DNA from: Takakia lepidozioides
Lineage: Eukaryota; Plantae; Bryophyta
Direction: 5' to 3'
NCBI GenBank assembly: GCA_030704615.1
Contig: CM060734.1
Coordinates: 19,220,001-19,284,000 of the forward strand
Length of the DNA stretch: 64,000 bases
The notes under the pieces were generated by a model that was given only the letters and a program-made list of their open reading frames with translations, did no database searches and was not told the DNA's origin. Made by a program: the position numbers and the translations under genes. Below, piece by piece: positions 5,836 to 62,994 of the stretch. Each line of letters starts with the position of its first letter. The stretch's first letter is position 1.

Positions 5836-5856
5836 GTCCCATGTCTTTCATTTCTT

Positions 5857-9430: not shown

Positions 9431-9450
9431 GTCCCATGTCTTTCATTTCT

Positions 9451-10146
9451 TTAATGTGACAATAACCAAAACTCTCTTCTGTAGTATCTCTCGTATATGC
9501 CTGGGTTTCTTTCAAGCTTCAATGCACCCTTGGCTATACTAGAAGTCTCCGTTACCATATAACCATATGGCAAACAAGTCTGGAAAGCTGTTCTTGGTGT
9601 GAGTTTGATCCACAAAATATCCTTTGGAATCCAATTCTTTACCAGAACAAGCTCCTCATGCATATGAGTATAAACATTCACCTTCATTTCCTCCAAGCCT
9701 TCAAACTCTACTCGCTTAATGGATAGCAATGCTATCACATAAACCAGTGTTGGTAACCAACGTGCTCTTCCTCTACAGGCCACCTGATAAATCTTTATCA
9801 CTCCTTTCTCCAGACCCCACTCAGGGTCAGCATCATGCACTCTTTTAAGAATGTTTTCTTTACAACCGTCTGGCAATTCCAAGAACCTCTGAAAGAATTG
9901 TTTGGACAATCTTTCCTTCTCAGTTTCACAGGGAATTTGATTCACATCAAATTCTTTAATTCTCCGACCACCATGATCCCACCAGATGCCTGTCACATCT
10001 GGTTGTTCATGACCCAGTTCCCCAGTATGGTCGCCAAATGTCGAGCGGCTTTGACTCACCCATCCCTTCGCTATCCGAGGTGGAAACTCCAGGATATAAG
10101 AGTTGGATATCTCTAAGCGCTCAGCCTGCTCAGAACAATCAATCAT
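9451..10146 (-). CDS. Extra ORF upstream of gag, 231 aa (copy 2)
   Basis: Intact paralogue of 5857-6552. Confidence 0.7.
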   Translation of the reverse strand: MIDCSEQAERLEISNSYILEFPPRIAKGWVSQSRSTFGDHTGELGHEQPDVTGIWWDHGGRRIKEFDVNQIPCETEKERLSKQFFQRFLELPDGCKENILKRVHDADPEWGLEKGVIKIYQVACRGRARWLPTLVYVIALLSIKRVEFEGLEEMKVNVYTHMHEELVLVKNWIPKDILWIKLTPRTAFQTCLPYGYMVTETSSIAKGALKLERNPGIYERYYRREFWLLSH

Positions 10147-10661
10147 GACCTACAGCTAGTGAATCATGGTTGTGCTTCCTGTTTGTATTCCTTCGTGCCT
10201 TCATGTTCTCAATTTATCTTACTGTGGATACTCAAGCATCAGATTGCTTCAGTATCTACCAAGTTCCAATCAATCATTCATTCATTCCACAGCTTCTCTC
10301 ATGTCTCTCTACACAATATGATTGTATCGTTTAAGTATCAGATTAAGATTAATCAGGTATTAGACCAATGCCATGGTGTCCCTATTCTACCCTACTGTAT
10401 GTTTCTACAGCTTGCATCAATTAAGCCTCAATCAAGTCATCATCTCCTCTTCACTGTTTCGCTCTCCATTTTGTCTCCTCCTCCCCTCACCAAGTCGCGC
10501 TCATCCCAGAAGTGATCCCCTTCCTACTGCCGCCCTCCTAATCTACCCGCAAGCTGTTCTAACCACCTAATTAACTAACCGTCACCCCTGAAGTAACACG
10601 TTCCCTCTGCAGATGTCGTTCCCTCACAGTCGTTCCCTGTCAATGATAACTGTTCCCCATG

Positions 10662-10838
10662 TACTGTGACAGACTGTGTCAAGCTGTGCCGAGCTGTGAC
10701 TGGTTGTGTAAAGCAGTGTCGGGTTGTGACTGGCTGTGCGAAGCTGTGGCGGACTGTGTAAAGCTGTGTCGGACTGTGACGGCTGTGACTGGCTGTGCGA
10801 AGCTGTGTCAGGTTGTGTGGAGCTGTGTCGGGCTGTGT
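10662..10838. repeat. Degenerate 9-bp GCTGTG-type tandem array of family A copy 2
   Basis: Same position and motif as 7072-7322. Confidence 0.9.
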
Positions 10839-19317: not shown

Positions 19318-21215
19318 CTAGATATTTTCATTCTTTTTGTCTGCGTCGTTCGCAGCGTACATATTTTCTTTCACTTTCTGTGCCTCCATCTTTCCAATAC
19401 GTTTGCAGCTTGACTTGGAGGTATTCTTATGAGGACGCATCGTCCACAAAACGTTGTTCGTGTGAATCCAGGTTGGTGGATCAGAAGGGTTGAACTCCCA
19501 AACTTTACTCCAACAATTTCTATATCTCTCCACATCGTCGGTTGTACTACCTTTAGGTCTCCACCACTCCACATGGACCTTGCGATACTGAGGACTCGAC
19601 TTGTCCCGAATGACCTCTGAAATTGCCACACCCATCTAGACTGGATATGTCTCAGTGTCTGCTGGCCGAACAAGAACGAAATTTCCAACCTCAACGTCCT
19701 GAAGGGGTTCATTGGCTCCTTAGGCTTTTGGCTCCTTGGTCCACAATATGGATCCATCTGATTCACATCCTCTTCCTCTTCCGCCTCTTCATCATTTTCA
19801 ACCCTAATCCCATCTCTTTCATGAGTTTCCTTCCAACAGGTCGAAGGCCAGAACCCTTCCTGAAGCTTGTCATTGGGAGGTGCAAAGATTTGTCAAGTTC
19901 TACTAGAATATCCTTCCAGTATTCATCAAAGTTCTTCATGATGGCTCCATAGTTGCTGTCCAGCTCCATTCCACGTTTCCAAAATTCACGATACTTAGAT
20001 ATACCATTTAGAATATGGACATTTTTCTCAGACTCCCCTTCACTCTTACCTTCCCAAATAGGCTTAAGCAGAACAGGGTCTGGGTCCCCCTTTGGGAGAA
20101 GGGGAGACCTCCCGTCCTCCGCCACCTTCCACATTTTCACAGCCAGTCAGCGTCGGTACCCGATTTCTTGTATTTCATCACTGGCCATCTCTCACCATCT
20201 ACATAAAATAAAAAAATATGCATATCTGTCTGTCCGATCAGCCGGTCGTTCCCGTCAATTATATACCCGTCCACATACTTCTTGAAATCTAGAACCTCTT
20301 GTATCAACTAAGGAATGAATGAGAGCTTTTGAGACTCCATAAACAGGTGCATGAGATCCGCCATGATATAGATATTATTCTGTTCCAGCTTCTTCGAGAG
20401 ATAACTAAAGTATGCATCAATGTCCTCGTGGGTATGACCTACCATCAAGAATCCAAGCTGGATCTCTTCAAAAACCCCTCTCGATGTCAGAAGCGACAGA
20501 AATACCAACATCCATCGATTCTTGTTGTCCTTTACGCAGTTGTCCATTTGTAGATAGAGTTGACGTGGTGATGGGTTTGGTCTATCTTGTCCTTCAACAG
20601 TAAAGGGCTTGAGAGCTCTTTCACACCTCAATTTTCCCCTCATCAGGGTTTCAAAAAAGGAGTTTTGCATTGGTGAATCGAAAAAAATTCTTGTTTCATG
20701 GCAAGGTGCTTTCTCAAGTTGTCGAAGACAACGAGCCAACGAGCCGATCGTAAAGTTGGGATCATTCGACAAGAATTCGTTGGAGAACTGAGCATAGGCA
20801 CCATCACCATGTCCGTGGGTCACCATGCCTGTCAGTGATATCGGCAGCTGCCCTAGATCAGATATCATCTTGTTTGTTACCTGTAACCTTGGCAACGCAG
20901 TCTTTGAATGGTCCATCTTATCGTGAATAATACAGAGAAATTCCGACCCCATCATCGTTGACTCATTCCTCCAACTGTGATAGAGCCTTCGACACGACTC
21001 TTGATGCTTCAGGTGTCTCTCCAGTTTTTTCTTATGTTTTTTCTGCTCCTCAGTTCGGTTGACTGATTTGTGGATTAAGTCTTTAAAGATCTTGCAATCC
21101 GTGCACTTCGCAAACTTACCACCTGCCTTCCAAATCTCCACGTTCGCAAAGATCTTTGTTTTAATCCGGCTAATGGCCGACTTCGACGACGATTTAAGAC
21201 CTAGAAGTCTGTTCG
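19318..21215 (-). mobile_element. Sola-like DDE DNA-transposon transposase remnant, copy 1
   Basis: FAKCTDC; IIHDKMD; LYLQMDNCVKDNKNR; FLMVGHTHEDIDA; fragmented C-terminal ORFs. Family assigned from motif recall; termini not found. Confidence 0.72.
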
Positions 21216-21397
21216 CCTAAAACCACAGCAAACTGGACATAAATAAAAAGAAAACGTGTCCATTACAAGAAATGATGCCATGAATGAGGACGGGAGGTCT
21301 CCTGTCCTCTTTGGTATGACTCTTACCTAGAAGTCTGTTCGCCTGAAACAACAGCAAACTGGACATAAATAAAAAGAAAAAGTGTCCATTAAAAGAC
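21198..21397. repeat. ~72-bp direct repeat, two copies about 127 bp apart
   Basis: acctagaagtctgttcgcct...ggacataaataaaaagaaaa..gtgtccatta occurs twice. Confidence 0.85.
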
Positions 21398-24100: not shown

Positions 24101-33339
<9,239 letters not shown>

Positions 33340-36107
33340 TGAGGAGGAAAGTGACTTCCAGACCTCCATACTGGGAAGGTGGCATTCAAATTGAATCAAG
33401 CAACTTGGGGAAGCGTTGAATGCTCCTTAAATGGAGGGTTTTCGTGCAAGATAAAGTTGCAATTGGTGAGGCATCCAGGCCATGCAGAACAACAACACCG
33501 GCGATTGAATTATGTAGTCAAAGAGTCAGTTTTGTATCCTTCTCAAATACGCCATGGATGGCCATCTCAATCATAATTAGAAGACCAGTTGAGGATTTTT
33601 GTTAAGTCAGTGCTTGTAAGACCTGACCAAAATGCCAGCTAGAACAGTCATGGAATTATCATCACAGTGCAATGGGTTCTGTGGTCTGACCTCCTGTAGC
33701 ACAAGCCCGGACAGTTATTGGACAGCTATTCAACAGCAAAACAATTTTTTGGAAGTGGCAGTATGCATTTGAATAGAGATATTTTATGGATTTATCATTT
33801 TGAACTTGGTCAGTTTTTGACAATTCATTGCTTCCTTCCACAACTCCTTGATTAGCATTTGCTGTAAAATCTTATGGGTGACACGGAGAATGTTCTCATC
33901 CATTAGGTCTACAGGTGAGACTGACGAAGTCATGTACCCTCTGCATACAGAGCACCAACCTCGGTGGTTGCTCTGTGCATAGTAGTCATCACCCTTGTTG
34001 GACACCTACATGTCGGTGTGTGCTCCGGTTCAGCGGTGTTCAGTCCGGAGGTGCATCCAGGCTTTTGGGATGTGCTACTCCAGGTAAGTATGACAATGAC
34101 AATCTGATATCTCTTCTGGGTTCTCACAGTCTGCTACGAATGGGAAGATAAAGGCAAGAAAATGATGGCAGCGATGATTGCTATGCTTGCATCCCTAAGA
34201 AGACCATGGGCTATCTATATATATGGAATGGAAGGGGGGTCCACAGGAATGTAAGTACAGGGGGTTTTGGAAGGTGAGCAGCTTGTCCAGCCCTTCCTCT
34301 GGGGTCCACTATCCCATATGGTTGGGACATGGTGGGCACGTGGGCGACTCTGAGGGTTTATATAGAATATACACCACCAAGCAGGTTTGGGGATTGAGGC
34401 CGCATTCCCCTAGTTTGATGAGCCGGCTTTCCGTCGAAAATAAGCCGCGTTGTAGGTGTGGCAAGAGTGGCAGAAGTGTAAACAGACACTGCAAGAAAGG
34501 GCAGTGAGAAGGGCAGACATTCTTCCTGCGGGCCCTTGGCAACAGCATTCCTCTGGACCTTTGATTCTTCCCATCTCTCTTTCCCCATTCCCTGGGACGT
34601 TTAGTTATTCTGGGGCCTGAAGAGAGTAGAGGCTGAGGTTACAATTTGTGTTGCCTCATCCGTTTGCTTCTTCACTGCTCACAAGCTGTTGGCATTCCCA
34701 TTCCAGGTTTTTACATCGTCTTACCTGCATTGGCCTACGGAGCTTTCGTCTTCACGGTGTCTGGTCCCTCTTTCCCACAATTCTTTGTCTATGTCGCCTT
34801 CATTCCTTTTCCCCAGGAGTTTCATACTATATTCTTCTGGGCTGGGTTAATTTTCTTCTTACAGCCTCCGTTCACATAAAGGTTGTTGGCCTGCCTTGTT
34901 AGACAATCCATTTTCAAAAGATCGTACTGGGAGATATTCTTTCGTCTGTGTCTGTGCATTCTCCTTCCGTATGTCCCTCTTACCACAGCATCCTCGTCCA
35001 TTCTAACTCAGGGAGAATGCGTGTCAAATCTTAAGACCTTGGGGCTGCTGGAGGAAACTCATTTTCTTCTCCAGAGTTCCACAGCAGGAACTTGTTGCTG
35101 CGTTGACAAGTCGACTGAGTGGGGAGGGAGGAGTTGGCTAACAGAGGGATACCTCAGGTCTAAGTCCTTATTGATTGAACGTCTAAAAAACTTCTCTCCC
35201 AAGGAGAATTTTTTGTGTATATGTGATTTTTCTAATTTCTAATCTCCGCTGTGGGTATGGTTTCATGTTGGCTGGCCTGGGGATTGTATGTGAAAGCATT
35301 GCTATGTTCTCACGCAACATCATATATCAGTAAGGTAGTTTTGTAGCTGGAGCAACGTGGACGCTTCATGGCTTATATGGAAGGGGGTTAATTTTCCCCC
35401 TCCTCTATAAAGGGCCTGAATTGTGAGTTGTCGCCCCTTTTAAGGGGAAAAAAAAGAGAGCAAAGAAATCTCTATCACTGACTGCGCTTCATCTACAGAA
35501 CTAACAATTTGGCAGTGCGTGGCATGGGAGATGCATGGAGCTGTTGATGTGGAGGTACTTCGAAGTCAACGTGATGTCGTAAAGTGTGGTACATGCTTCC
35601 TTCCAAACATTCAACTCTTCCTCCCATTTTGCCTTGTCATCAGCGCTCTGGTCGATGTGCTCCCTGCAGTTTCCGAGCTCACATTCGGCAAAGGTATCAC
35701 ACCTCCGCTGCCTGCATCCGTTGTCAATATCTGCATTGTCCTCCACTGCAAAGCCATTGCTGCATCCTCCTCTAATATGTCACCTTCCGCGCTCATGTGC
35801 GTCACCATCCCGTCATCCACGTAATAAGTAGGCCCGCCTTCACACAAACTGCTACACAAAGTGTCTGTTCACGATCGATTGTAAGCGGCAGCGTCCCTTG
35901 TGCTTCGCAAGTGTGCTCAATAGACAAGTTGAACAAATCGGTAGAAACGGAGTTGCTGTGTTATCATTCCATATCTCTTACATTTTCGCTAATCCCGAGC
36001 TGATCCGCAACAGATGTAGAGTACATGTTTGGCTTTCCAGAATTGGGGTACTTACGACCCCTTCCATATGTAGCGTTTCTCCACGTACAGCTTGTTTTTA
36101 ATACATA

Positions 36108-36635
36108 CTAGGGTAGCCTATGCTGTTGGCCCAAGCGTCCAATGTCATCTATGTCCAAGTGCAATCCCCTATGTATCCAGAGACCCCACTGTTTGGGAGA
36201 TCTAGGGTAGCCTGTGCCAGTGGCCTATGTGTGAAGAATCGAAATCTAAGCCCCCCACTGTATCCAAGTGCGTGTCCCATATAAAGGCCCAGGTGCGACC
36301 TCCAGTGTCCAATGTCACCAATGTCACCTAAGTCCAAGTGCAATCCCAAAACCCACTTTGCTATTTTTCGCGAATTTCCAGCGACCAAAAGTACTTGCGA
36401 TTCCAAATCTCCCACGTGAAGGGCCAATCATTGCTCCAGAAAAGCCCACTTTGCTATTTTTCCCGAATTTCCAGCGACCAAAAGTACTTGAAATTCCACA
36501 TCTCCCACACACCGCAGGTCCAAAATCATGAGACCAAGCCCGTGCACCCCTTCTCGTCGAGGGCAAAACAAAACAAAACACCCCTTCTCGTCGAGGGAAA
36601 ACAAAACAAAACAAGCGTCTCGCTTCATATATTGA
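36108..36635 (-). mobile_element. Non-autonomous Helitron-like element
   Basis: Minus strand reads A|TC...CTAG|T with an imperfect subterminal hairpin and a (GTTTT)n tract near the 5' end; related copy at 44209-45030. Confidence 0.75.
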
Positions 36636-37316
36636 TTGGGCTGTGTGCGACTAGGCCCAACAAAAATGACATGTCTATATACCGTGGGAAGAAACTTATT
36701 TACTCAAAAGAATTTCGATTTCGTGAGAATATTTACAATATATTCTACATTTTGTAGAATATATTCTGTGTTAAGATTTGACCAGTGTTGGACTGGTATA
36801 TAGGTGAAGGACTGGTATATGCATTGGTATTATATACCAGACCAGTCTGGTATCATTTTGGAGAATACTTGGTCATATACTAGACCAGGCTGGTATCCGT
36901 TTTTTCGTACCAGCCACAGTAACAGTACTCTCCTGCCTGTCTTCCTAGGGAGTCAGTGGGGGGGGGGAGAGCCCGGGAGTGTTCAAGACCGGATTAGGCT
37001 GATCAGGTTCACACTATGAACTGTTGGGAAGGAGATGTGGAGACGAGGAAACGAGAGGTCTAAGAGAGACGAAGGGACGGTTAAACAGTCTCTTACTCTC
37101 TCAATCTCTCACCACAAACTGCGGAGCTACATCACACACCCCTCCCATCAATTTTTCCTTATATTTATCTGGCGGCCCTTCATTTGTCTTTTGGTACACA
37201 TGGTCATAAATGTAAATACATATATGTGCTCAGCAGCGCAGGTCACACTAGTCACAAATGATATCACCACATTATGACTTTGATTGTAAAATATAATGAT
37301 CCCTTGCTAGTTCTAT

Positions 37317-37468
37317 GAGTGAGATGATGGCAAAGGCCCAGTGGAAAATACCAGGGTGACTTGATCAGCTAGAGAAGTATCCTGGGCGAGTGAGACAATG
37401 GCAAAGGCCCAGTGGAAAATACCAGGGTGACTTGATCAGCTAGAGAAGTATCCCGGGCGAGTGAGACA
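37317..37468. repeat. 71-bp tandem duplication (2.1 copies)
   Basis: Units start at 37317, 37388 and 37459. Confidence 0.95.
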
Positions 37469-39615
37469 GTTGGACACATGAAATATTGCTTCAGTGTGAT
37501 GTTGCCCTGCACACGATCTTGGGGGGGCACCTACCCTATGGTAGATTTGTAGACAGCAGAGCTGGCCAAGGGACTACAATACAATGAGAGTAAGAGTGAG
37601 TCTGGTTGAGGAAAGGCGTCCAAAACTGCAGAAAGATCTGCCTCTTGACAAGGGTAAACTGGATCTGTGATTTGACTGAGTGCGGCTGGTATGTTGGAGG
37701 CAGGAGCAAACAGAAGAGCAAGAAATCTTGAAATTGACAGCCAGCTAGTCAGTTCGAGTGACATACCGGTGTATTGCTGTAGCAAGTCCGAAGCAAAGGC
37801 ATTTAACATATGGGGCAATCTATTAGAATACTGCTGTATGTGCAATAATCCTCCGACATTGTCCAGCATCCTGGAGCCATTCTTCACATACCAAAGGCCT
37901 CATGCAAAAGTCTTTGATGGACAGAGCTACTCACTATGAAAATTCTGCACTGCACCTTATTGCTGGACAGTGGCAGAAGTTCCGGACCTTCAAAGTCACA
38001 TGGCGTACATTGCTGTTGTTGTTCCCAAGCAAGAGAGTCAAATCCAAGTGACTGATATATGGCTTGCAGGGTGCTGGATAGGAAATCCCTTTCACTTATG
38101 AGCACGTTTGTGCATGATTCTGAATGAAAGACCAAATTCAGCTTCATGCCACTGCATTTACCATGCAGAGGTACTGTCCTGAACCAGATGTATCAAAAGT
38201 GAGTGCATAAATACCTACAACTGAGGCCTCTTCAAAATCATAATCTAATCCACATCTGCTCTTAAGCTTTCAGCCTGAAAAAAATGATGTTTCATCTCAA
38301 GCACTGAAACATTTCTAGCATACACTATACTCAGGCCACCTGAGAGCACTTTTTAGCCTGTTGGAGCCAGTCATCTGGGCAGATGCTTTGGCTAACCTCC
38401 TCTGAAGTGCAAACCGCACATCATGTGCTGGCCATCTAGCGAGACAAATTTTTTGTTTATGCCAGCCTGCTTCCCCTGCTGCCGCCCCTTGACTACCCTT
38501 GGCTTCGGAGCACTTGAAGCTGCAGAAAGGTGATAGCATTACAAAAGTGAGTATAGAATGAGGTCCAGCTTGGTTACATACTCAAAATCATTACTGGAGG
38601 GGTTTAGCTGTGGGGCTTGGGGCTCCTAGGCACAGAGTAAGACATTCATGCCATCCCACGCTTTGCTCTACAGCTATTCAGGAAAGACATCTAGTAAGGC
38701 CATTCCATTGTTCGGAAATGTCCTTCAGATATAATAAACTCTGGAGCTAACTGTGGACATACCTTGTAGCCTCTGCTTGTAATCATGACAGGTGTGCTTG
38801 CTGGGAGTTGATCTAGCCAAACATTGGGGTCTCCCATTTGCACAACCAGCATTCGGCTTTCGCCACTGACAGGTAACTGACGTGCCAACTCTACTTGAAG
38901 GAATGGGATGTTTCGAGCCCACCACCTTTGAAAGCGAACACTGCAATGACAATTGTTCACTACCTTCTGTCCCATCCTGCCAATCTTGCCTGAAATTTTT
39001 TCGCCTTCGACTTTGGACCCTTTCTGACCTCTTTCCCTTGATCCCCACTCTACCCTTTCCAGCAGTCTCCAGCATAGTCATTTCCCCCTGCCTGTATTGA
39101 ACACTTAATATCTGAGATGGGTTGGGTGCTGATGATATACATGGCCTAAGCGAACAGGAAAATTAACGACTGATTCAGCTGCCCAGAACTCCCGTGTATC
39201 TGTGGTTGTCCTCCCCATCTTTTCAAACCCAAGAAAGCTGCAGGCTAAGGCGTCCACAGAGCAGAAACTAACGGGAAGGGACTCGTTCCTATGCTTGCCA
39301 GTTCCCATCCCCTTCACTAATAGGCTATTTGGATGCAGTAGCTGGGACTCATAAGCCCAGCATTTGGCTCCTGCCATAGCCATGGTTGTCCGCTGCCTTT
39401 TGAAAGCTCTTCTGGCTGTGTCATGCTCTACTTCTACCGACATGTCCAGACATATTTTCTTCTCCTCGGTAGAAAGTCCCCCTCTTTTTTTGTAGTGCTG
39501 TGCTGCACTGAATGGGGATCCCAAGTACTCTAACTCATTCCTTGCTGTACTTTCGGGTGATTCAGGACAGCTCTTGATTGCAGTATGGAGAGCTGCCCTT
39601 GGTCTTACTCCTGAC

Positions 39616-42600
39616 TTATGGGAAGAAACTCCTGTCTCTGGTGCGTTTCCTGCACCTCTTGTTCTCCTCAAACACAAGAGTGGTGCAAGCACCTTTTTGA
39701 AGTTCCACTATGTCAGAGATCATGGCAGTTACATTTGGCAGAAGTGAGCCAGCTCCACAGTTTCCCATGGCATGATAATACCTAGCTGATGCTGGTCCAT
39801 CTAGAAAGAGAGTGGATCTCTGAGGATGCTGAACTCTGCCATGAGAAAGTGGAATCAGTAATTGAGCCTGATTTCCAGGGGGAAAAGACTCTGGCTCACC
39901 ACCAGATACAGCCTCTTCCGTGGAACATTGCACGGGTTTAAATACTCTGGCCTTCATCTTCCATCTGCTCTGTCGATTTGTTGCCCACTCTCCTCCAGGC
40001 CTGTATGTGATTGACTTACTGCCCACAGCAAACCCCGGTGTAGCAGAGACTGAGAAAGCTCTCATTTTTGTCCTCGTGCCTTGTGTCCTGCATATGTGCT
40101 GTTCTTCCATCTTTGCTACAGGAAGTGGAAACTGCAAATCAGTCCACACTTGCTCTGCCTTAATTACAAACAAAGGCATATGGTTTGGGACTAGAAAATG
40201 AGCAGTGGGGTCCAAGGATTGCTTGGTGGCCCCTTGACAAAGCACAAGGCTAGAAGCAAGACCACCCTCTCTAATGTCAGGCAGTTGGACCTTAAAAGGC
40301 ATACAGGTAGGCATTGTACTAAAGACAAAGCTGCTGTCATTTAGTGTCCCAGATTGCTTGGACACCCCTACCCAAGGCAGCAGAACATCGGACCCTGCAG
40401 GCTTCACAGACATGCCTGCAGAGTGCCTTCCAATCACAGAGTACTTCCTGTCCGACATGAGTTCCCCAACTTCAGAGTGATGGTGGCTTACAGGTTGTAC
40501 CAAACCTCGAGAAGTCTGGATAGTCAAGTCATCATGCGTATTATGGTCTGATTCGATCAACATCTCTTCTCTCTCTTTCATTGGTCCCCCCACTGTCACC
40601 TGCATTACATCATGTTTTAGAAAAGTTTTTTGAACCACTCCGTGCGGGATTCAAATACCACCCCCGAGATTTTTAAACCTCATCTCATAGAAACCATTGT
40701 GAGAGTTCCATTTCTGTCACTGGCACATGTAGCAGCAGCAAAGGCAGGAACAAATGGCTGAGAGAATGGGCTGTGACCCGACACTCATACAAGCCAGTAT
40801 CAGTGATAGGGCCTTGGCTCATGATCCCAAACAAAAAACAACTGCAGACATACTAACATTGCCTATTACCAAAAGTGCTTAAGACAAAGAACCAACAACA
40901 ACACAAAGGCAGCTAGCATAAGCTCCTGTGGCAAGAGAGAGATGAGAGCGTAAGACCATTTCTAAATCCACCAAAGAGAGATTGTTGTTCACATAATGTA
41001 GTTCTAAAATGTTACATTGCTGCTACTTACCAGGCACGGCAATGAACTGTTGCCAGATACAGAAATATTGGCATCCCCCCCAGCTGAGTTTACTTGAACT
41101 TGAGAGCCGTCAGCCTGAAGGGTAGGCAGCCTGCTAAACTTGCTAAGCTTCCCTATTTCTGAGTCATCCTTTCCCAATTTCAAACAGGGAGACTGGTTTG
41201 TGTTCCATGATTGCTCTGACTTTCGCTTCTTCCTGCCTTTATCAAAATGTGACTCCACAGAGCGCTGGCTCTGTGAGATGCCATCAGGTTGGACTTCAGC
41301 ATCCTCCTCATTTTCACAATTCCGAGCAGAACCCCCTTCTTCCACTTCTGGGGGGTCAAGAAGGCTGGGATCTGAGGTCACTAGATTAAGCACTTCACTC
41401 ACTGAATCATAATAGTGGACCCCCTTGACTGACGAGCCCTTTGAGAAGCCCTGCACACTTGGACACACAAACACCAGTAAGCTCTTCGGCCGAAATGAGC
41501 TCCGGCTCCCAATTTCCTCAGAATGCCACTTCCTGGCTAATAGGCGTGGCCACACAGCTTCCCAAAACAAATCATTAGCACGAGCTTTGCTGATGCGAAA
41601 GTCTCCAGTGAGGAATTTCACAAGCTCCTCCTTGGATAAGGTGGAGCAAGCCTTCCCAACAGGAATTTCTGTCCTCCCCCCAGCCCCGTGGCCACCCCGC
41701 GAAGGGTCTACATGGACAGATGTTAGGTCCATCTTGGGTGCACCTATCCCCACACACTCCACCAGGAGCTCCAATCCTGCTACAGCCTTGAGTTGCGCCA
41801 CAAAGTCCTCTAGTGGGACCTCCCCATTGTTGAATGCATTTATAGCCTGCCAACAAAAGCCATGGCAAACCCCCACTTTCAAAACCCAGATGATGTAGGT
41901 GCTGTCAACAAACTGCTTCTTGAGCAGCTAGTAGTGCTGAGGCATGTTATGAATTGTGATCTTTGTCAATGCAATTACTTTTGGTCACTTCAACTCGAAT
42001 TACAGACATGATTGCTTCAGCTAAGCAAGCCTGAAGGTTTGGTTTCCCCAATGAAGTGCTTCACATCACTGGGTTCCCCTGGAAGCCCCAAACACATACA
42101 ATGTTGCACAATGAAGTCGAATGTTTCTTACCACCAGAAGTTGGGGCCTTGCGGACTCTGGTAGTCTAGAAAGCATCCGCACCAACAGCTCCTGCTGCCG
42201 CCAACTAGACAAAATACGTGCCCCATGAACACTCCGCCTGCTCTGAGAATTTTTGGAGGATGACCACCTCAGATATGTAGAGGTTCCATAAAATTGGCCA
42301 TAGTAATAATGCAATATGTCCTTCATCTCCTTGTCTCCTACAAATCTTTTTACAACAGATAAATCTTTGCCAAACAGATGAAGCCCTAGTACAAATGCAG
42401 CCACTTCTTTGTCAGTCCATGAGGCAGGTCGGCCGCCAGGCACAGTCCAGCTGTGAGCACCTGTTCCTCCCTGTTGCCATGCCTCATCAAATTCCATATG
42501 CTGCCTAATTGAGTGTGCCCCTCTGCTACCTTTGCGGCCCTTTTCTACTTGCATTCTCTTTGTCACTTTCCCCACTCGCGCCCATCGATTTCCTCTCCTC

Positions 42601-43226
42601 TTTCTGTTCCTACCTCCACGAATTCCATCACCTAGTGACATACCTTTACAGCCTTTAACGTCCAATTCGGTAAATCTAACACTCATTGAGGTGGGCAGTT
42701 TGATTTCTGGACTTTCCAAAGCAAGGCTTGTATCAAATGAACTTCCTGATGGCTGTCTATCTAAGTCTAAACCGTCTCTATTTGGCACCTGCGGACCCCA
42801 CTCAGATTCGCTGAGGTCCTTTACAACCTCAGTCGAGATCATGGAATTGTCCACAGGCTTTAATTCCTCCTCCCGGCCCAATCTAGAATCCACTTCTTCC
42901 CGCTTGGTTCTCTCTCGAGGAGGCTCCCCACCGAGCTGTCGCTTTGTTGAAGCCAAAAATGAAAGGCGAGGAATGCACATCACGGGCACCACTGGTAGGC
43001 CATTCGCATACAGTCGCTCCATATCTACATCTACGATTTCCCTGCGAAATTGTTGCCTGTAATCAGAATGCCTGGTCTGACAATTATATCCTGGAGTCCC
43101 TGTGAAAGAAGGAACAGTTGCCTGATGCTTACGTCCGATCTGAGGCCATACGCGTGGACAGCCAGACATCACCGCTGAGCTGGATGAACCCCAGTGCGAA
43201 CGACCCTTTGGGAAAACGGTCTCCAT
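39616..43226 (-). CDS. Plant SANT-domain protein (ELM2-like motif, SANT, conserved FWEAVWPRLL domain). Exons: 43226-42132, 41846-41031, 40599-39616. C-terminus possibly frameshifted.
   Basis: IGRKHQATVP; WTDKEVAAFVLGLHLFGKDL..YYYGQFY; LTGDFRISKARANDLFWEAVWPRLLARKWHSE; GT-AG introns in phase. Confidence 0.85.
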
Positions 43227-44208
43227 GTTGTGTCTTCCCGGTCAGGCCTGGCGCACCAGGTCCCTACCTTCGTCCTTATGCATTGAATCCATTCTTAGTT
43301 TACTGCTCCAAAGCTATACAAGTTCGCAATTATCACCAGATTTTGAGGGATATCGCTCTAAGTTTCCATGCGAGCGATCTAAGCTCCCAACCCCATTGCT
43401 AGAGCCGAATTTAATGAGGCATCTATCGTTCCAACCTCAATCCAGGTGTTGTTGACTGTTTCACGTTTCACTCACGTCTCTAACATTATACATGTACTTC
43501 GAAAAACCCCTTCAACGTGCAGATAATTGCTTCTAGTGTGGGACCCCAAAACAGTTTTGTGCGCGGAGACTGTGATGGCGCGATTGAGCTCCTTCCAGCA
43601 CATCCTGGGCAATGCGGGGTGTGGAATTGCGCTTCCACTTGGGAAATGCAAAGATCCCTCTGGGAGCTATATGAGCCTTGAGCCACAGCTGCTGGTCCAG
43701 ATCCCAACACAGATTGTCAGCTGACGTTCACACCACTCCGCGTTTCCCACAGACGTCACCACCACTGACTCCGCTCCTGAATTTCTTTGCAGTAGCCAAA
43801 AACCTCAGACTCAATTCTCGCAAACGACAATTCACAGATCCCTACTTTCTCTACATCCAAATCCACGAACCCATCTCCTAAAATCCTACAACCACCACGC
43901 CACCTCTCACACAAACAGAAACAAACCTCCCAGCTCCTCCCCCGCAATCCACGATCCCCTCCAGCAGAACCCACGATCCTGATCACCACATCCCTCCTCC
44001 GTCACTCTACCGATTGCCAACCCCCAAGCACGAGGAGCCCAGCCGCCAGAGGTCAGACATGCCACAGACATGCAGCCGTCATAAAGTTGTAGGAAACCGA
44101 GGGGGCCAGGCCGGCCATCCCCGCTGTCATTTATGCTGGTATGTATCCTATACTAATTTATGTGCACATATGCGTACATATTTGTACTTATGTATAGTTA
44201 TTGCTTTA

Positions 44209-45030
44209 CTAGGGTAGCCTGTGCCGTTGGCCCAAGTGTCCAAGTGCAATCCTGTATGTATCCAAGTGGGCTCCTGTGTCCATGCCCAAATGCGACCTCT
44301 AGGGTAGCATGTGCCGTTGGCCCAAGTGTCCAGTGTCATCCAAGTCCAAGTGCAATCTCCTATGTCGAGGCCCAAATGCAACCTCTAGGTAGCCTGTGCC
44401 CTTGGCCCAAGTGTCATCTAAGTCCAAGTGCAATCCCCTATGTATCTAGAGACCCTCATGTTTGGGAGATCTAGGCCTAGGGTAGCATGCGCCATTGGCC
44501 CATGTGTTAATAATTGAAATCTAAGTCCAAGTGCAATCCCCTATGTATTAAGTAGCGTCTTCTATGTCCATGTGCGAAGAATTGAAATCTAAGCCCAAGT
44601 GCAATTTCTTATGTATCCAAGTGGGTCTTCTATGTCGAGGCCCAAGTCTATTCATGCATTCAAGTGCATCTCCCATGTACATGCCCAAGTGTCTAGTGTC
44701 ATCTAAGTCCAAGTGCAATCCCATATCTCATCATTTTTTTTATTTTCAAAGTGCCTACAACCAGATTTGAACAGGAGACCTTTCCCTTGTGTCTCTCCTG
44801 TCGAGGCTCAACCATTCTCCTAGGAATGCCCACTTTGCCATTTTTTCTATTTTTTGTGAATTTCCAGCGACCAAAAGTACTTGGAATTCCACATCTCCCA
44901 CACCGTAGGTCCAAAAATCATGAGACCATGCACCCCGTCGAGGGCTTTCCAACGGTACCAAGCATCAGGGCTAGGGCCTTGCGGTTTGGGACATCTCAGC
45001 GTGACAAAACAAAACAAATGTCTTGCTTGA
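44209..45030 (-). mobile_element. Non-autonomous Helitron-like element with reiterated 3' ends
   Basis: ctagggtagc.tgtgcc module repeated at ~44209, 44299, 44385 and 44477; same 5' end as the 36108-36635 copy apart from a short deletion. Confidence 0.75.
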
Positions 45031-45515
45031 TGGGTTGTATTTGTTTTCAGTTGATACTTTGCTATTTGATAAACTTGTACTTCAAAGATGGCTTTGGAAT
45101 GATACCAGAATTGATATCTCACACCAGCTGGTATTGTGGTCATGATACTCATAGCAGTACCTGACATCCACCATTATATAGACCAGACTCGTATGAAAGT
45201 TTTGTGACACGCCTAGTACCAGGACCAGACTGGTATGTCCTAAACCTGATACCAGAACAGCACTGGATTTGACTCTCTTTTTTCACATATTTGGGTTTGT
45301 TGGGCATGCTGTTTGATTGGTGCGCAGGGTCATGTACAATCTGCTGAGAATGCTATGTATGTATCGAAGGCACCATCACTTAAGAAAGGAAGTTTCGTAA
45401 AAGGGATTCAGTGTATTCCAGTTTTTGAAGATTCACCGTCTTTACATCAAGAGGAAAATCATGAGCTAACAAGCTACGAAAATCAAGACAGGGTCCACCA
45501 AATCTGGATGCAAAA

Positions 45516-48500
45516 TCACATTGTTGCATGGATGTCCTTCGAAAAATCTATGTTGGTGCTTGATCTTTCTTTGTTGGGGTCAAAACTCTTGAGCATTTGG
45601 TGTGATAAGACATCGTGGACATGCGCTTGCTTGATGCGCTTGGCTTTGATCCAAGCGGGTTCCTGCCATCCATCCAACCGGAGCTCACCTCAGTCCCGCC
45701 AGAAAGTATGCTCCATGGCAAGGGAACACAAGCTTGTCATAAGGTAACATTGCTGTTACAGCGGTGGTGCGGAATGGGTGGATAGTTGCAAGAGAGAGAG
45801 GGGGAGGTTGTAAGGTAATAGAAAGAAAGGAGTGCAGGCCAAACAGAAGATTGTAGGAAAAGGAAGGTGGTGAATGAGAGGAGACCAGACTGGAGGAGAC
45901 GAACCTCAGGTACAAACCAAGAAAAGCCAAATTTGGCCAGCAGCAGCAGATGTTCCAGTATCAAGATTGCAGCAAGCCCTGGTTCCATCTTCCAACGCTT
46001 CGCATCATCATACAAGCACACTAGCAGTGCGCAGTTGGTTATAATTGCCACCACCCCTAGATTCTGCACACATTCAGAGTATCATACCTTAAGATCCGCA
46101 AAAGAAAAGTTTTCCTTCTTTGTGAAATACAAATGCTAGCATTGTGTAATCTTCAAACCCAATCAAGTACCCACTCAGCAAGACAGACAGCTGAAGAGAA
46201 AGAGCAAGGGAAATGCATGTGCTTGCACCAACCTGGAAAATTGCAAGCCAAGCACCGATTGTGGCAGCTGTATGGGGGACAGGCCGTCGCATCGTAACCA
46301 AAAGTTTCAAGGAGTCAGACCGTATCTCCACCAAATTATTCTGTCTCCCCATTTGAACCCACTATCTCAATCTCTATTTTCCATTCCCCATGTCTTTGAA
46401 ACACAGACACAGATTTTGGCAGACTTTCAACTAAAAAAGAACAGCTATGTCAAACCAAAGACTTTTCCAGTCCAGATGTCTCTACCAACTCCTATATTCC
46501 ATGTGTTTCATGCCTCCCAAGATTCAGCTGTATAGGAGAGAGGTTGCGTAAGTTACAATCATACTCCACTTCACCAGTGCCAAAGCTGTCAGTATTCTAC
46601 TTTCCATATTGCAACTTCGAAAGTGTAAGCTGGTTGAATATCAGTGGAGCAGTCTAAAATGCATCTGTCTTGTTCATGCCAATATTGAGAGGAAAAAGAT
46701 TTCTCACAATGAGAGCGAATGCTGCGACAAGGGGGAATGCGCTAGCAAACATGGTAACCATGCCGAATTGCACTGCCAGTTCCAGAAAGTCTGCTTCCAC
46801 CACACACCCAAATGCCAAAGATGTTTCTAATGAAACTCAAAGAGCTTATGGGATAAAAGAGAGCAGAACACAAAAAAAGGTAATGTCCCTGGCAACAAGT
46901 CAAACAATAAGAAATAACTTCAGATGCCCACAGCCGAAGTGGCTAGCCATGCAAGTAATCTGCCAGGCATTTCGTATCCTCAAAGCTGAAAGCCTCTAAA
47001 AAGAGTGGGAAACAGAAAAAGAAACAAACAAACTTCATAGCTTCCACAGAAAGAGTCTTACCATCAAAAAGACCATCCTCAAGTTCGCTGGTGATGCTGG
47101 CCTTATATGCGGGCTTCAGATACTCCTTTTCCACCCATGAAGCTTGTGATTCACTCACCTTCTCTCTATCTGTCTTCTTGTGCTCTTGATCCGCCCTGGT
47201 TAGCAAAACGTACAAGGCACTGACACTTCATCAGAATCAGCAGCTCTATATGCCTGGAGATCATGACTACCCCCTAAAAACCTGCTTCCACTATAACACA
47301 TTTAGGAGAGGTGACATGATTAGGAGGAGAATTTTACTGGAATGCTTTATACTTGGCGTAGCGGTATGTCAGATATGGCACCAAGTTCTGGGCAACATTG
47401 CTGATTAACTGCACAGGTGGAAACAATTGTCAGGTCAAGAACCCTTTTCTGCCCAAATCCAAGACAAATGAAGTCATGTGTGAGCATGCAGCCACTTATC
47501 CATAGAAAACTCAAACAAAAAGGTCCTACTTATCGCAACCCACTTTTGAAGATTCTGGAGCAGAACATCACCTGAGACACTATCAAACGTTGTGCCAGCA
47601 TCTGGCGGACCTCATCGAAGTCCTGATGGAAAAAAGCTTGATAAAATAGGCCTATGTACGACTGCATGAAGTAGATTCCAAAGACCTGCCAAATACAGAA
47701 GTTTCCTTCAACACTTGCTGTGTTTACTTTTCAGGGAAAAAGTCTAGGGCGAAATATAGACTTTGTTTATGTCCTCTTAATATTTGAAGTCAAGAAATGC
47801 AGGAGATGTGAAGATTGTAGACTAATTAATTCTATATGTATTTTCATAAACTTTTGCCTGCTACTATGTCCAAAGGCCAAGTCCACCATATTGACATAGC
47901 CCAAGCAAATGCATTCAACACGTTCTTGGTCTTGGGAAGGAGGGTTAACGTGTAGGACATTTATGGCAGCTGAGAGTGCATCTGCAAAACCCCTCTAAGT
48001 AATTCTTTATCGTCCATTGCGCAAGACTGCTAGTTCAGCCTGCACTAAGATATGCACAAATCTGGTAAAACAGGACTCTTAGTTACCTTGTAGATAATGC
48101 TATCAGCAGCTGCCTCATAACTGTAATTTTGCGTCTTTGTAAGCTTGAGTGCAACTTGTCCCCCCTTTTTTGTGAAGTATTGAATTGACATTATGTATAT
48201 TCCTGTGAGCGTGAACCTGAAGATATGGAGAAAGGCAAAGCCTTCATCTTAGTCCTCTGTAGAAAACGAACCAAAGACATGAAAAGATTACATAGATGGA
48301 TATGGAGACTTACTTAAGAATGCTGTAAGAAGCAATGCGATTTAGGTGAGCATATAGGAGCTCAAATGGAAGCTGTAGACACAGGATAGCACTGATCACA
48401 ATAGCATTGTTTCTTAGAGATATGAGCCGGCTCAACCATTCCTCTTTTTCCAGCACTCGGTTCTCCTGCTTTGACACATTAGCTTGCACCAACTGTGTTT

Positions 48501-54189: not shown

Positions 54190-56260
54190 TCTTTAAAAAA
54201 ACCGGAATACGTGCATTTCGGAAGTCCCGATCAACTCTTCATTTCCATCTAGAATAAAGCCTTTGACGAACTTCTTAAAGTCGGGTACCTCATGAATAAG
54301 TTGTGGAATAAACTGCAGATCTTAAGAGATCATGAATGACCTCATCAAATCCGGAAGAATGTAGGTGTTCCGTTCCTTTAGCTTCTTCGATAGGTAGCTG
54401 AAGAAACCATCAATATCTTCCTGAGTGTGGCCGACCCTGAGAAACCCCAGCTGGATCTCCTCAAAAACACCTTTGGCAGTAAGGAGGGAAAGGAAAGCAA
54501 GCATCCATCTATTCTTGTTATCCTTCGCGGAGTTGTCCATTTGTAGATAGAGTCATCTCGGAAGCCAACGAGCACCCCTTTTGTCTTGTGGCGTGCAAGG
54601 TTTCAAAGCATCCAAACATCTCAATTTACCTCTCATGAGCGTTTCAAGGAAATCATTCTGAAGTGCATAATAAAAAATGTTCCTGGACTCTCGACAGGTT
54701 GGCTTCTCAAGCCGGCGAAGACAACGAGCCAAAGAACCAATCGTAAAGTTTGAATTTCCCTTCCAGAACTCGAGAGAGAGAACTGACCGTATGCTCCATC
54801 CCCGTGTCCATGTGTGACCATTCCCATTAGCGAGACAGGCAACTGACCCAGTCTCGAGATCATCTTGTTGGGTGTCTGTAGCCTCGGAATAGCTGTTTTC
54901 CTATGATCCATCTTATCGTGAATAATACAGAGAAACTCCTCCGGAATCATAACTGACTCATTCCTCCAGCTATGGCACAATCTTCTGCATGACTCCTGGT
55001 GCCTCAAATGTTTATCAAGCGCTCGTTTATGTGCGACCTGTTCCGTATTCCTCTTGATAGACTTTTTGATCAAGTCCTTCAACATCTCACATTCCGTGCA
55101 CTTTGCAAATGTGGTTCCAGTTTTTCAGACCTCCACGTTCGGAAATATTTTATTCCTGATACGGCTAACAGCAGGCTGCGAGATTGGTTTCAATCCAAAT
55201 ACTCTGTTCGTCTGAACCCCAAAATGTCAGACACTAAACATCCACTGGCCAGTGGAGGTTTGGGAAACATACATGCCGGAAAGAAAATGAAAATATTTGA
55301 AGTGTTCAAGGAAGAAAACAAATTTGAGTGAGGTAAAAAAATAATGCAGAATTATTACCTCATGGGACTCCTCTCGTATTCTCTTCCAGTTCATTTCCGG
55401 TGGTAAGACCCTCAAAGTATCCTGCCTTCCATCCCCAATGCACCTTGTCTTATGAGGCATGAGGTCCGAATTTCCGTTAATAATGGACATGATGGTCCCC
55501 TCTGCCTCGATGGTCTGTGGTCATGGCCGCTTCACGCCACGGTTCCCATGAAGAGATGACAGCCAACCCTCTTTACTCAACTTTTTGTACTCTATGTAGG
55601 TGAACCTACCAATTCCATGAATTGTCCACCATGCTTTCTCACAAACATCAACACCCTCAATGGTTACGTAAGCCCTCCGCGACGTTCCTTCCAGCACGTG
55701 AAGTCCTTTAGAAACATTTAGTCCATGTTCTCTCCTCTCATCAAATGTGGACCCCCAAAATGCAGTGCGGATAGCCAATGTTTTCCTCCAATCGAAATAT
55801 TGGCAGCACTGAAGTATGCAGCAATTTTTGCTACTAACAGATCGGACTTCCTCCATAGTAACATTTCTCTTGCATTTTTTGAAGTCATGTGCTGTGGCAA
55901 CCAACTTCTTCCTGGTGAAATGGCCTGCACGCCGATTTCTTCACACCAGTCTCATGATCGTCATTTTGAGTATCGTCAGAAGATCGGATAAAATTCTCCA
56001 AATCAACACACAGCAGACGCCTGTTCTCCAAAAGTTTGTTTTTGTCAACGGCCATTTTACAAGTGACATCAGACAACCAGATCCTCCAGATAATATTCTG
56101 GTCACAAGAACCCCAACATCGTCCTCTCCAAGCTTGTCATTGAGAATTACTTCGTCCGGTATGCAAGTTTGAATTCGACCTTCGAACAGGGCACTACCAT
56201 CATCTCCAAGGAGCAAACACTACAAGTTTCTCCAGCTGTTCCTTCCCAATCCTTCACCGG
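54190..56260 (-). mobile_element. Sola-like DDE transposase remnant, copy 2 (intron at ~55200-55356; stops and frameshifts)
   Basis: CC...CC; VCEKAWWTIHGI..HGN; FAKCTEC; IIHDKMD; MDNSAKDNKNR; VGHTQEDIDG; paralogous to 20308-21141. Confidence 0.75.
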
Positions 56261-59523: not shown

Positions 59524-61042
59524 CAGCTCGTATCTATGAGTGCTAGATACGAGTTAGTTGTAGCACTTGTGGTTTTTGCTTGAGATTGAGAGAAACCAAG
59601 TTGTTATGCAAGGAGCACCATGGAGCTCTTGGTTGTTAGAAGCGGAGGCGATGTGGGTTATGAGGTGGTAGACCTTGGCATTCGATCTTCAGCTTCAGAG
59701 ATGAAAGCACCATGCTGCAGGTAATTTCAGAGCACCTTGATGGTTTCAGATTGTGTACATGCATGAGCAAGCACGATTGGGAAGAGGACCAGTCAAGAGC
59801 AGGTTATAGTGGCTTTGGTGGCAAAGCTGAGAACTGGACTTGGGAATGCGAGCTTTCATTGTGTGAAGGATTGCAAGACCAAGCGAAAGGGCTGATTTTG
59901 CTTGGGGCAAATCAGTGCACTTTGTGGAGTATGGTGAGATTGGGTTTCAATCTCGAGCTTCAGCATTGAGAGGGCTCTTGTCATGGCAAGAGCAGGGCTG
60001 GAACAGGAGCTAAGAGGTGCGGCAAGGCCATGGAATGTGCACCTAGGGTTTCAGAGCTTGGAAGAAGAGTTCTTGCACCACAAGAGAAGTGTCTTGTGGC
60101 TGGAAATGTAAGCCTTAGGGTTTCAGGAGCTTGGCAAAGGCTATGGAGTGCTTAGTTTTGTCATAGAGAGCATCAAGGAGCCAAGGAGCCAAGATAGGGG
60201 GCTGATATCTCTTGTGTGAAGAGGTTGCATGTGTGGAGCATGTATTCAGCTCATTGAAGCTTCCATCTTCAAGCTTGGAGGGCAAGCAAGGAAGAGGGAA
60301 GGGCTGACTTCCCTTATGTGAGGGCAATGTATGTGTGGAGCATGCTGTCAGCCTGGTGAAGGCTTGCACTTTTAGGTGTGGGAGTGCAAGGAAGGAAGGA
60401 AGGGGCTGGTTTCCCTGTAGGGCATGTAGAGCATGCTTTCAGCCTGCTGAAGCTTGTATTTTCAGGTTTGTGGATGCAAGAAATGAAGCAAAGGAGCTGA
60501 TTCTCTTATGGTGAGAGTGGGGCATGTGTGGAGCATGCCTTCAGCCCATTGAGGCTCTTGTTTTCAAGCCTTAGAGAGCTAGAACGGAAGGTCTAGGGCT
60601 GGTTTCCACTTGGAGTGAAAGAAAAGCACTTGTAGGGCCTATGTGAGTTGGGGTTTCAACTTCAAGCTTGAAGGGAGCGCAACTCTTGAAGCAACAGGTG
60701 TAGAGGGCTGGAATAGGCTCTAAGACAGATGTTATGGCCAATGAGAGTGCTTGAATGAGTGCTCACAAGGGCTGGAACCAGCAGGGCTTGGTTGTTTGCC
60801 ATTGAGTTTAGTGGCGTGTTTGGGGAGGCTAAGTGAGAAAAAAGGCTTGGTTTGTGGCAACCACCTCATGGCTTAGGGCTACTATGGTGGTGTGTGGGAG
60901 CCGAAAGAGCAAGGATACCTTGCTGATTTCCTCACAGCCACCATAGCTCGGTGGAAAGAAGCCTAGAGTCCAAGAGACACAAACCCTAGCTTGGCGTGGC
61001 TAAACCCCTTGGAGAAATGGCTAAACTGCCAGAGCGGCCATG

Positions 61043-62092
61043 TGTGGGGCTGTGACAGGCTGTGGCAAGCTGTGACAGGCTGTGACGGGCTGTGACAGGC
61101 TGTGGCAAGCTGTGACAGGCTGTGATGGGCTGTGATAGGCTGTGCCCTGTGCCCTGTGGGGCTGTGACGGGCTGTGTCAGGCTGTGACGGGCTGTGTCAG
61201 GCTGTGACAGGCTGTGCCCAGTGGCCTTTTGGGGCTGTGACAGGCTGTGCCCTGAGGCCTGTGGGGCTGTGACGGGCTGTGACAGGCTGTGCCCATGGCC
61301 TTTGGGGCTGTGATGGGCTGTGAGGGGCTGTGACAGGCCGTGCCTGAGGCCTTTGAGGCTGTGATGGGCTGTGATGGGCTGTGACAGGCTATGCCTTGTG
61401 CCCTGTGGGGCTGTGCGGGGCTGTGACAGGCTGTGCCCTGAGGCCTGTGGGGCTGTGACGGGCTGTGACAGGCTGTGCCCATGGCCTTTGGGGCTGTGAT
61501 GGGCTGTGAGGGCTGTGATAGGCCGTGCCTGAGGCCTTTGCGGCTGTGAGGGGCTGTGAGGGGCTGTGACAGGCCGTGCCCGAGGCCTTTGAGGCTGTGA
61601 CGTGCTGTGAGGGGCTGTGACAGGCCGTGCCCATGGCCTTTGGGGCTGTGACGGGCTGTGAGGGGCTGTGACAGGCCGTGCCTGAGGCCTTTGAGGCTGT
61701 GACGGGCTGTGAGGGGCTGTGACAGGCCGTGCCCATGGCCTTTGGGCTGTGACGGGCTGTGAGGGGCTGTGACAGGCCGCGCCTGAGGCCTTTGGGGCTG
61801 TGACGGGCTGTGAGGGGCTGTGACAGGCCGTGCCTGAGGCCTTTGGGGCTGTGATGGGCTGTGACAGGCCGTGCCTGAGGCCTTTGAGGCTGTGACGGGC
61901 TGTGAGGGGCCGTGACAGGCCGTGCCCATGGCCTTTGGGGCTGTGACAGGCCGCGCCTGAGGCCTTTGGGGCTGTGACGGGCTGTGAGGGGCTGTGACAG
62001 GCTGTGCCTGAGGCCTTTGAGGCTGTGACGAGCTGTGAGGGGCTGTGACAGGCTGTGCCCAGTGGCCTGTGGGACTGTGACGGCTGTGACCA
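61043..62092. repeat. ~1-kb minisatellite of GGCTGTGAC 9-mers with a higher-order ~37-46-bp period
   Basis: Directly visible. Confidence 0.96.
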
Positions 62093-62994
62093 GTGAGCTG
62101 TGTGGGCCTGTGCTGGTCTGTGGTGGCCCGTGTTGACCTGTGGACGGCCTGTGCTGACTCGTGGAGGCACTGGTGGACTGCCTAAGGACTGGCATGTGGT
62201 CTGGAAGGCCGAATTTTGAAGCTCGTGGAGGGCGGTTTGAGGAGTATCTTCATGATATTCCCATGGTCATGCAAGTGAGGGAAGAGAGGAGAGGAAGAGT
62301 GTTGGGATGAGGGCCTGGGGTTAGGCATTGCTTTAGCTTCTCTTCCTCGTAGTTTCCCCCCTCTCATTAGGCCAAGACCTTTCCGTAGGTGGAGGCAAGA
62401 GTCAGTCCGAGTTTGGGCTGGGGTGTCCTTGCAGGAGCAACACCGTGGAGTTGTTTTTGGTGTGGGGGAGTTGTCGTTCTGATTTCTTGTGTTTGGATCC
62501 CCTCCATACCTGCATGCTTGACTGTGCGCCATGCTAGTTTTGTGTGGGCGCTTGTTTTTATAGGTATTGGTCCGGATTTGATCACCGGCCAGTCCTAGAG
62601 CATGCTGTCGATGGTGAGGCTGGGGTGATGACCAGCCAGACCATCATTGTTTCTCTTGTGGTGAGGTTGGAGGTGATGACCAGCCAACCATAGGAGTGCT
62701 TGCGGTGGATGCAGGTACAGGTGTAGGCTATGTTAGGAACTTAGTATTCCAAACCATAAGCCGCAACAGGTTCTCTACCCGGTTACCTTGTGGAGAGGGG
62801 GTTAGGGACATGTTCATGCTGGGGATAGTGCCGGTTCGAGCACTAGCGATACTAGTGGGTACACGAGACGAGGTGTGCGGTTTAGGCCACCTTCACCTCC
62901 TGTGTCTTCTACGGAAGGTTCTGATTCGGATTGTGAATCAGGAGGACTCATACCGGCGGTGCAAGTTGTTTCTTTGCCATTGTTGTGGGACACA

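Follow-up and report, generated by a model that had tools for sequence, protein, structure and literature searches.

A candidate hAT-like element carrying an apparently whole SANT1-4-type gene in the moss Takakia lepidozioides

We analysed a stretch of 64,000 nucleotides from the genome of the moss Takakia lepidozioides (assembly GCA_030704615.1, contig CM060734.1, positions 19,220,001 to 19,284,000), hereafter the window. Between an HSP60/Cpn60 gene and an anoctamin gene, at positions 36783-45265 of the window, lie 8.5 kb of DNA that begin and end with inverted repeats, are enclosed by two copies of the 8-bp sequence GATTTGAC, and carry a gene of the SANT1-4 family on the minus strand. An earlier note on this DNA had proposed that the 8.5 kb are a Pack-type element of the hAT superfamily, which brought a nearly whole gene, with its introns and upstream region, into the interval between HSP60 and anoctamin. 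We find this interpretation probable in its essentials, and we discuss below the structure on which it is based and the other histories that might have produced it.

The ends of the 8.5 kb have the structure of a hAT-like insertion. GATTTGAC is a direct repeat at 36775-36782 and 45266-45273, whose length is exactly 8 bases, since the bases bordering the two copies differ on either side. Immediately inside these copies, the 17 bases at 36783-36799 (plus strand) match the reverse complement of 45249-45265 (minus strand) at 14 of the 17 positions, and both sequences begin with CAGTG. The perfect 8-bp target-site duplication (TSD) and the CAGTG-type terminal inverted repeats (TIRs) of the earlier note are thus both present at the positions where it had placed them. 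The TIRs of hAT elements are short and have the consensus start 5'-YARNG, to which both CAGTG termini conform, and GATTTGAC has the length of the 8-bp TSD characteristic of the superfamily. A scan of the whole window for perfect 8-bp direct repeats adjoining inverted repeats of at least 14/17 matches, with a spacing of 300-20000 bp, returned this pair as the sole match; in 200 simulated windows (first-order Markov), such pairs numbered 0.025 per window on average. Taken alone, this geometry is expected to occur occasionally by chance across a genome of thousands of windows, and the convincing part of the evidence is the set of motifs that lies behind the termini.

These motifs are of two kinds. 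The heptamer CTGGTAT/ATACCAG occurs 17 times in the 64 kb, of which five in 36793-36890 and four in 45102-45249. The palindrome ACCAGNCTGGTAT, when at most one mismatch is allowed, has six matches for 0.38 expected, a number that none of the shuffled sequences reached. The six matches represent four sites, two of them also matching on the opposite strand, and all are within the two arms, with a spacing inside each arm of 42-43 bp. The 5' arm (36783-36930, plus strand, about 148 bp) consists of the TIR, five of the heptamers, and two copies of ACCAGNCTGGTAT that are 43 bp apart (36841 and 36884); its likeness to related elements of other mosses stops at about 36930. The 3' arm (45032-45265, plus strand, 234 bp) includes four heptamers and two palindrome units (45182 and 45224), and aligns to the same related elements with a z-score of about 8. 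Short subterminal repeats common to both arms, which are a further trait of hAT elements, are thus found in the form of CTGGTAT/ATACCAG and of ACCAGNCTGGTAT, and the palindrome units are probable candidates for transposase binding sites. The earlier note had described motif clusters in both arms and was right on the two intervals given above, though not on 44130-44208, which it had assigned to the 3' arm: this segment contains a single CTGGTAT (44136) and has no significant similarity to either arm or to the related elements.

The arms belong to a genuine moss repeat family, with CAGTG(T/C)TG termini and units of 42-45 bp around ACCAGNCTGGTAT. The protein and contig collections searched include neither Takakia nor its close relatives, and our comparisons of the arms use moss DNA from metagenomes. 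We scanned metagenome contigs for two spaced copies of the palindrome and recovered 17 contigs, of which one (L006) contains NB-ARC and LRR exons, and is thus plant DNA; it is the sole contig of the 17 whose open reading frames (ORFs) gave Pfam matches. The 17 contigs contain tandem arrays of 42-45-bp units, every unit opening with a palindrome of the ACCAGNCTGGTAT type, and several show the unit boundaries CAGTGTTGG...CCAACACTG, where CCAACACTG is the complement of CAGTGTTGG. Two of them contain a 16-mer that is one base off the 5' terminus in the window (L005:6362 and L009:6459). The related units measure 336-427 bp, and in three contigs (L009:1496-2030, also L005 and L006) the DNA around such a CAGTGTTGG/CCAACACTG-bounded unit is the same. 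When aligned to the 427-bp unit of L009, the 5' arm scores 57 (26 ± 4 for shuffled sequences) and the 3' arm 82 (33 ± 6). The earlier note had suggested a search for other elements with these arms, and the arm family is represented in 17 moss contigs. We dropped the idea that the two arms are the collinear 5' and 3' halves of one relative: owing to the internal repeats and palindromes of the family, each arm finds matches in the same arrays on either strand.

Two further observations were made on these contigs. In L009, an inverted copy of the right end of the unit, plus flank, lies 87 nt past the unit, and the unit may belong to a larger, foldback-like element. In another contig, a frame of 849 codons (L018:7987-10533, minus strand) is open at 1.7 kb from a palindrome array of the arm family, and has no Pfam or Atlas match.

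The two arms enclose 8.1 kb of non-transposon DNA. As the earlier note had stated, there is no transposase between them: none of the 26 interior ORFs, on both strands, has a transposase domain of Pfam. More generally, the domains of hAT transposases (BED finger, DDE core, hAT dimerisation) were found in none of the tested ORFs of the interior, of the window, or of the 17 metagenome loci (large ORFs), and there are no Rfam matches in 33000-47000. The cargo is a gene of the SANT1-4 family (38725-43226, minus strand), delineated by domain matches and homology, for which searches were done exon by exon. Its exon-like frames follow each other on the minus strand: 43226-42066 (386 codons), with the DUF7952/Myb-SANT domain (E = 1.5e-34); 41882-41004 (292 codons), with the end of DUF7952 and with DUF7650 (E = 1.2e-34); 40638-39616 (340 codons); 39692-39105 (195 codons); and a C-terminal frame at about 39141-38725, which ends with the stop codon at 38725. 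The block 39141-38896 of this last frame is conserved in the homologue encoded by L001, a distantly related contig that is probably from another moss, and is in frame up to the stop codon. An intron at about 42137-41850 was placed by homology to full-length plant proteins. The earlier description of an intron-containing SANT gene with an upstream region is thus borne out: at least one intron is backed by homology, and the upstream DNA amounts to about 1 kb. Judging from the long open frames, the gene is near-complete or complete, and its reading frame is apparently intact. The DNA upstream of the start codon (43227-44206, minus strand, about 1 kb) is not arm-like and probably includes the 5' untranslated region (UTR) and the promoter, and the 1.8 kb or so downstream of the stop codon (36931-38724, minus strand) probably include the 3' UTR and further DNA, with a tandem duplication of 71 bp at 37317-37468.

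All the homologues listed have both DUF7952 and DUF7650, including one named 'like AT2G47820'. With its SANT/DUF7952 domain followed by DUF7650, the cargo belongs to the land-plant group of 'SANT domain-containing proteins' that includes AT2G47820, and is a homologue of Arabidopsis SANT1-4. These four proteins are AT1G09050, AT1G09040, AT2G47820, and AT1G55050 (PMC12902250), and are subunits of HDA6/HDA19 histone deacetylase complexes together with MBD proteins and a Harbinger-derived protein (PMC12902250, PMC11694752), a role established in Arabidopsis only. Exons of a host gene (DUF7952 and DUF7650, with homologues across land plants) are hence found within a non-autonomous TIR element, which is the hallmark of Pack-TYPE elements. 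The relatives of the 386-aa exon are distant (P0001, 52%; the gymnosperm protein P0002, 35%), and P0002 used as a query returned seed plants only. In a quick tree of the DUF7650 exon, the gene of the window groups with the homologue on L001 as its sister (98% support). With a terminal branch of 0.57, against 1.22 for this homologue, the gene does not look decayed.

The flanking genes are those named in the earlier note. HSP60/Cpn60 is on the plus strand (27140-33328) and has a glycine-methionine-rich C-terminus and a stop codon at about 33328. Anoctamin is on the minus strand, where its last two exons (45677-45516 and about 46069-45899) span 45516-46069. The insertion site lies 243 nt beyond the stop codon of anoctamin and 3.4 kb beyond that of HSP60, probably in or just beyond the 3' UTR of anoctamin, and the SANT gene is in tandem behind anoctamin and convergent with HSP60. 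The nearest anoctamin loci in the collections (L020 and L021) are 91% identical to each other, and their exons are about 78-84% identical to those of the window. They have neither SANT nor HSP60 within 8.2 kb and 3.3 kb, respectively, downstream of the last exon. The SANT locus on the L001 contig (L024) has no HSP60 and no arm motifs within 14.5 kb downstream. A SANT gene at this position, which according to the earlier note would have spoken against an insertion, was seen in none of the outgroup loci compared (L020, L021, and L024), all of which lack the neighbours seen in the window. The same note had expected HSP60 next to anoctamin in relatives, and this was not the case at L020 and L021. 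Since this adjacency is not conserved in the mosses compared, and since the untranslated DNA of L020 and L021 is too diverged to align to the window, the empty site is unreadable and synteny is indecisive. On the other side of HSP60, a diverged (66%) inverted repeat of 0.5 kb (25729-26208 versus 27034-26553) lies just upstream of the first exon of this gene, and the ORFs beside it (24908-26103) have no Pfam match.

Two other features touch the limits of the element. One is a repeat, which we call R and which the earlier note had missed, whose two copies are 0.5-0.8 kb long, 70-80% identical, and in the same orientation. The inner copy (44207-45031, plus strand) abuts the start of the 3' arm, and the outer copy (36106-36628, plus strand) is outside the element and ends 147 nt before the insertion site. 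R is unclassified and consists of degenerate internal repeats of about 90 bp, a duplicated box of about 93 bp, and a (CAAAA)n-like tail. We rejected R as a part of the arm family, because it is absent from the related moss elements and the DNA bordering it is unrelated to the arms; the 147 nt after the outer copy and the DNA before both copies are also unrelated to each other. The other feature is a perfect inverted copy, 16 nt long, of the 3' junction of the element (38031-38046, minus strand; equal to 45264-45279, which comprise the terminal 2 TIR bases, the TSD, and 6 flanking bases), about 680 nt past the stop codon of the SANT gene. With two gaps, the match reaches 24 nt; it scores 34 against a 66-nt junction query, for a background of about 25, and about 0.0015 such matches are expected in the window. 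There is no arm-like sequence beside 38031-38046. A second junction-like site, at 37669, was discarded for its background-level score.

We think it fairly probable that 36783-45265 is one non-autonomous, hAT-like element, of Pack-type or composite structure, which moved a whole gene. Three traits would place it in hAT: the TSD of 8 bp, the termini starting with CAGTG, and the subterminal repeats. When ends of the same family, in the correct inverted orientation, are enclosed by an exact TSD, the standard reading is a single insertion event, in which the 8.5 kb would have moved as a unit. Under such a process, a hAT transposase supplied in trans would recognise the two outer ends, and the whole unit would insert at GATTTGAC, downstream of anoctamin, duplicating 8 bases. 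The cargo could have been acquired in two ways, both described for hAT and Pack-TYPE elements (PMC8903248, section 9; PMC3260210). Two neighbouring insertions of the same family around the gene may have been remobilised as a unit after deletion or mutation of the inner ends, as in Pack-TYPE elements and macrotransposons, or a short element may have been filled with foreign DNA by repair after excision. The former route fits the way in which both arms break off within the sequence of the family, with no inner termini to be recognised. 'Pack-type' implies the capture of a copy (transduplication); a composite of two neighbouring elements, or a gene that exists once and was relocated, would fit equally well. 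The proposal of the earlier note thus retains its hAT-like structure, its arm family, the lack of transposase, and the near-whole gene with upstream DNA, and loses 44130-44208 as a part of an arm.

A number of points weigh against this reading. That gene and ends moved together into the interval between HSP60 and anoctamin is suggested by one observation, the TSD. The case is made from a single locus: the collections searched, which do not cover Takakia or its close relatives, yielded neither an empty site nor a donor locus, a further copy, or an autonomous partner. None of the related copies in the metagenome loci has a clean 8-bp TSD, and the call of the superfamily therefore depends on this one copy. 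The target consensus of hAT elements is nTnnnnAn, which GATTTGAC fits at one of the two defined positions (A at position 7, and A instead of T at position 2). HSP60 is also missing downstream of anoctamin in the relatives, and the loss of synteny may thus be caused by general rearrangement and not by insertion. Finally, the copies of R at either side and the internal 16-nt copy of the junction are oddities without explanation; either could be the scar of a more complex local rearrangement.

The perfect inverted copy of the 3' junction at 38031-38046, with its expectation of about 0.0015, together with the two copies of R, one close by the 5' end on its outer side and one on the inner side of the 3' arm, would fit an alternative (two-element) transposition or a linked rearrangement, as in close Ac/Ds pairs. 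Each end would then derive from another element in the vicinity, and a SANT gene that was resident or nearby would, with the rest of the local DNA, have been inverted or reshuffled and not imported from afar. Such rearrangements are documented for hAT pairs (PMC9910405, PMC3429523). We nevertheless regard this history as quite improbable here, because the two copies of the TSD are in direct orientation at the outer ends, like in a simple insertion, the similarity at 38031 ends after 24 nt with no arm-like sequence adjoining it, and the copies of R are old (70-80% identical) with unrelated flanks. It is also conceivable, if unlikely, that the TSD was made by a short, arms-only element of about 380 bp, and that the 8.1 kb with the SANT gene and the inner copy of R entered later in situ, either as filler DNA from double-strand-break repair after an abortive excision or by nested insertion, in which case the gene never travelled with the ends. 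At 8 kb, the cargo is very large for filler DNA, its boundaries show no TSD, TIR, or microhomology, and no second gene-carrying mobile element is visible. Yet, the summed length of the arms (148 + 234 bp) fits that of the 336-427-bp related units, the edges of the cargo fall inside arm sequence and not at inner termini, and filler DNA is common in Ds-like elements (PMC3260210).

The remaining alternative dispenses with mobility of the gene: SANT would be a resident, two separate short elements of the same family would have landed on either side of it, and the identity of the 8-mers would be a coincidence. Local insertions of the same family in the same orientation are frequent (PMC8903248), and the segment 36829-36930 of the 5' arm can be aligned, in direct orientation, to the terminal part of the 3' arm (score of 53, null of 28 ± 6), such that the 5' arm might represent a complete mini-element whose inner end has decayed. 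The alignment takes in a terminus-like tail of the 5' arm, at about 36918-36930, but such a tail is a general feature of the repeat unit of the family. Moreover, two given 8-mers are identical by chance only once per about 65,000, no inner 5' terminus was detectable in or before the 3' arm, and neither GATTTGAC nor any other matching 8-mer was found beside the putative inner ends, all of which makes this history very improbable.

The movement of a whole gene by a hAT-like element, which remains our preferred interpretation, would be of interest. Gene capture by hAT elements has been described as rare and as involving mostly fragments, and a whole, apparently functional, intron-containing gene with flanking DNA between hAT-type ends would be a clear natural example of relocation or duplication in a bryophyte. 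Furthermore, the pairing of gene and carrier is noteworthy in that the Arabidopsis members of the cargo's family work in a histone deacetylase complex that also includes a domesticated transposase. One may go a step further and suppose that the only functional SANT copy of this moss, with its own promoter, was relocated inside an element of hAT type and is able to move again. We give this a small chance, but if true, a regulator of chromatin silencing would itself be transposon-borne. For the moment, the locus is a good candidate and not a demonstrated case: the observation is solid and its interpretation probable.

The window contains other repeats, away from the element. Two direct copies of 3.4 kb (3854-7212 and 7447-10829), 89% identical and about 235 nt apart, are either a tandem duplication or paired long repeats. 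A transposon-like gene with DUF7869 (8.3e-24) is found at 54322-55904 (minus strand), and a second, 68%-identical copy lies 34 kb away (20378-21224). A long degenerate tandem array occupies 61041-62122, in units of about 50 bp that are 70-80% identical, and related short stretches are found at 7073-7321 (7.1 kb) and at 10.7 kb.

Precedents exist in Pack-hAT and compound Ds-like elements, in macrotransposons, and in a fungal hAT that contains histone H3. The Takakia case is unusual in that the host is a moss and the cargo an entire, seemingly functional gene including its flanks. Close parallels are found in Pack-TYPE elements and Pack-hAT (Gisby & Catoni 2022, PMC8903248; model of Catoni et al. 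2019), which are non-autonomous TIR elements without transposase, with a genic interior and conserved termini, and for which the proposed origin, two neighbouring same-family insertions that lost their inner TIRs and were remobilised, agrees with the truncated arms described above. The elements described occur in multi-copy clusters and contain short pieces of exons, of tens to hundreds of bp, whereas that of Takakia carries an apparently whole gene of 4.5 kb, with introns and flanking DNA, and is known in one copy, in a moss. The compound Ds-like elements and macrotransposons of the maize Ac/Ds system (PMC3260210 and macrotransposon studies cited there; PMC9910405) resemble it in that many kb of unrelated DNA can be mobilised between hAT ends, with a TSD of 8 bp. 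E.g., a compound Ds-l4 element of 7.3 kb contains trapped sequence, in a superfamily where gene capture is rare (PMC3260210). The trapped DNA of the maize cases consists of retrotransposons or of fragments of genes, or else the elements arose in genetic stocks, whereas the Takakia element contains a single conserved gene in a wild moss genome. The hAT element of Dothideomycetes that contains histone H3 (PMC6710886) is similar in associating a hAT element with a housekeeping, chromatin-related coding sequence. This carrier is complete and autonomous, and the captured gene is present in hundreds of copies, which repeat-induced point mutation (RIP) has inactivated. In Takakia, in contrast, the carrier is non-autonomous and the gene looks intact.

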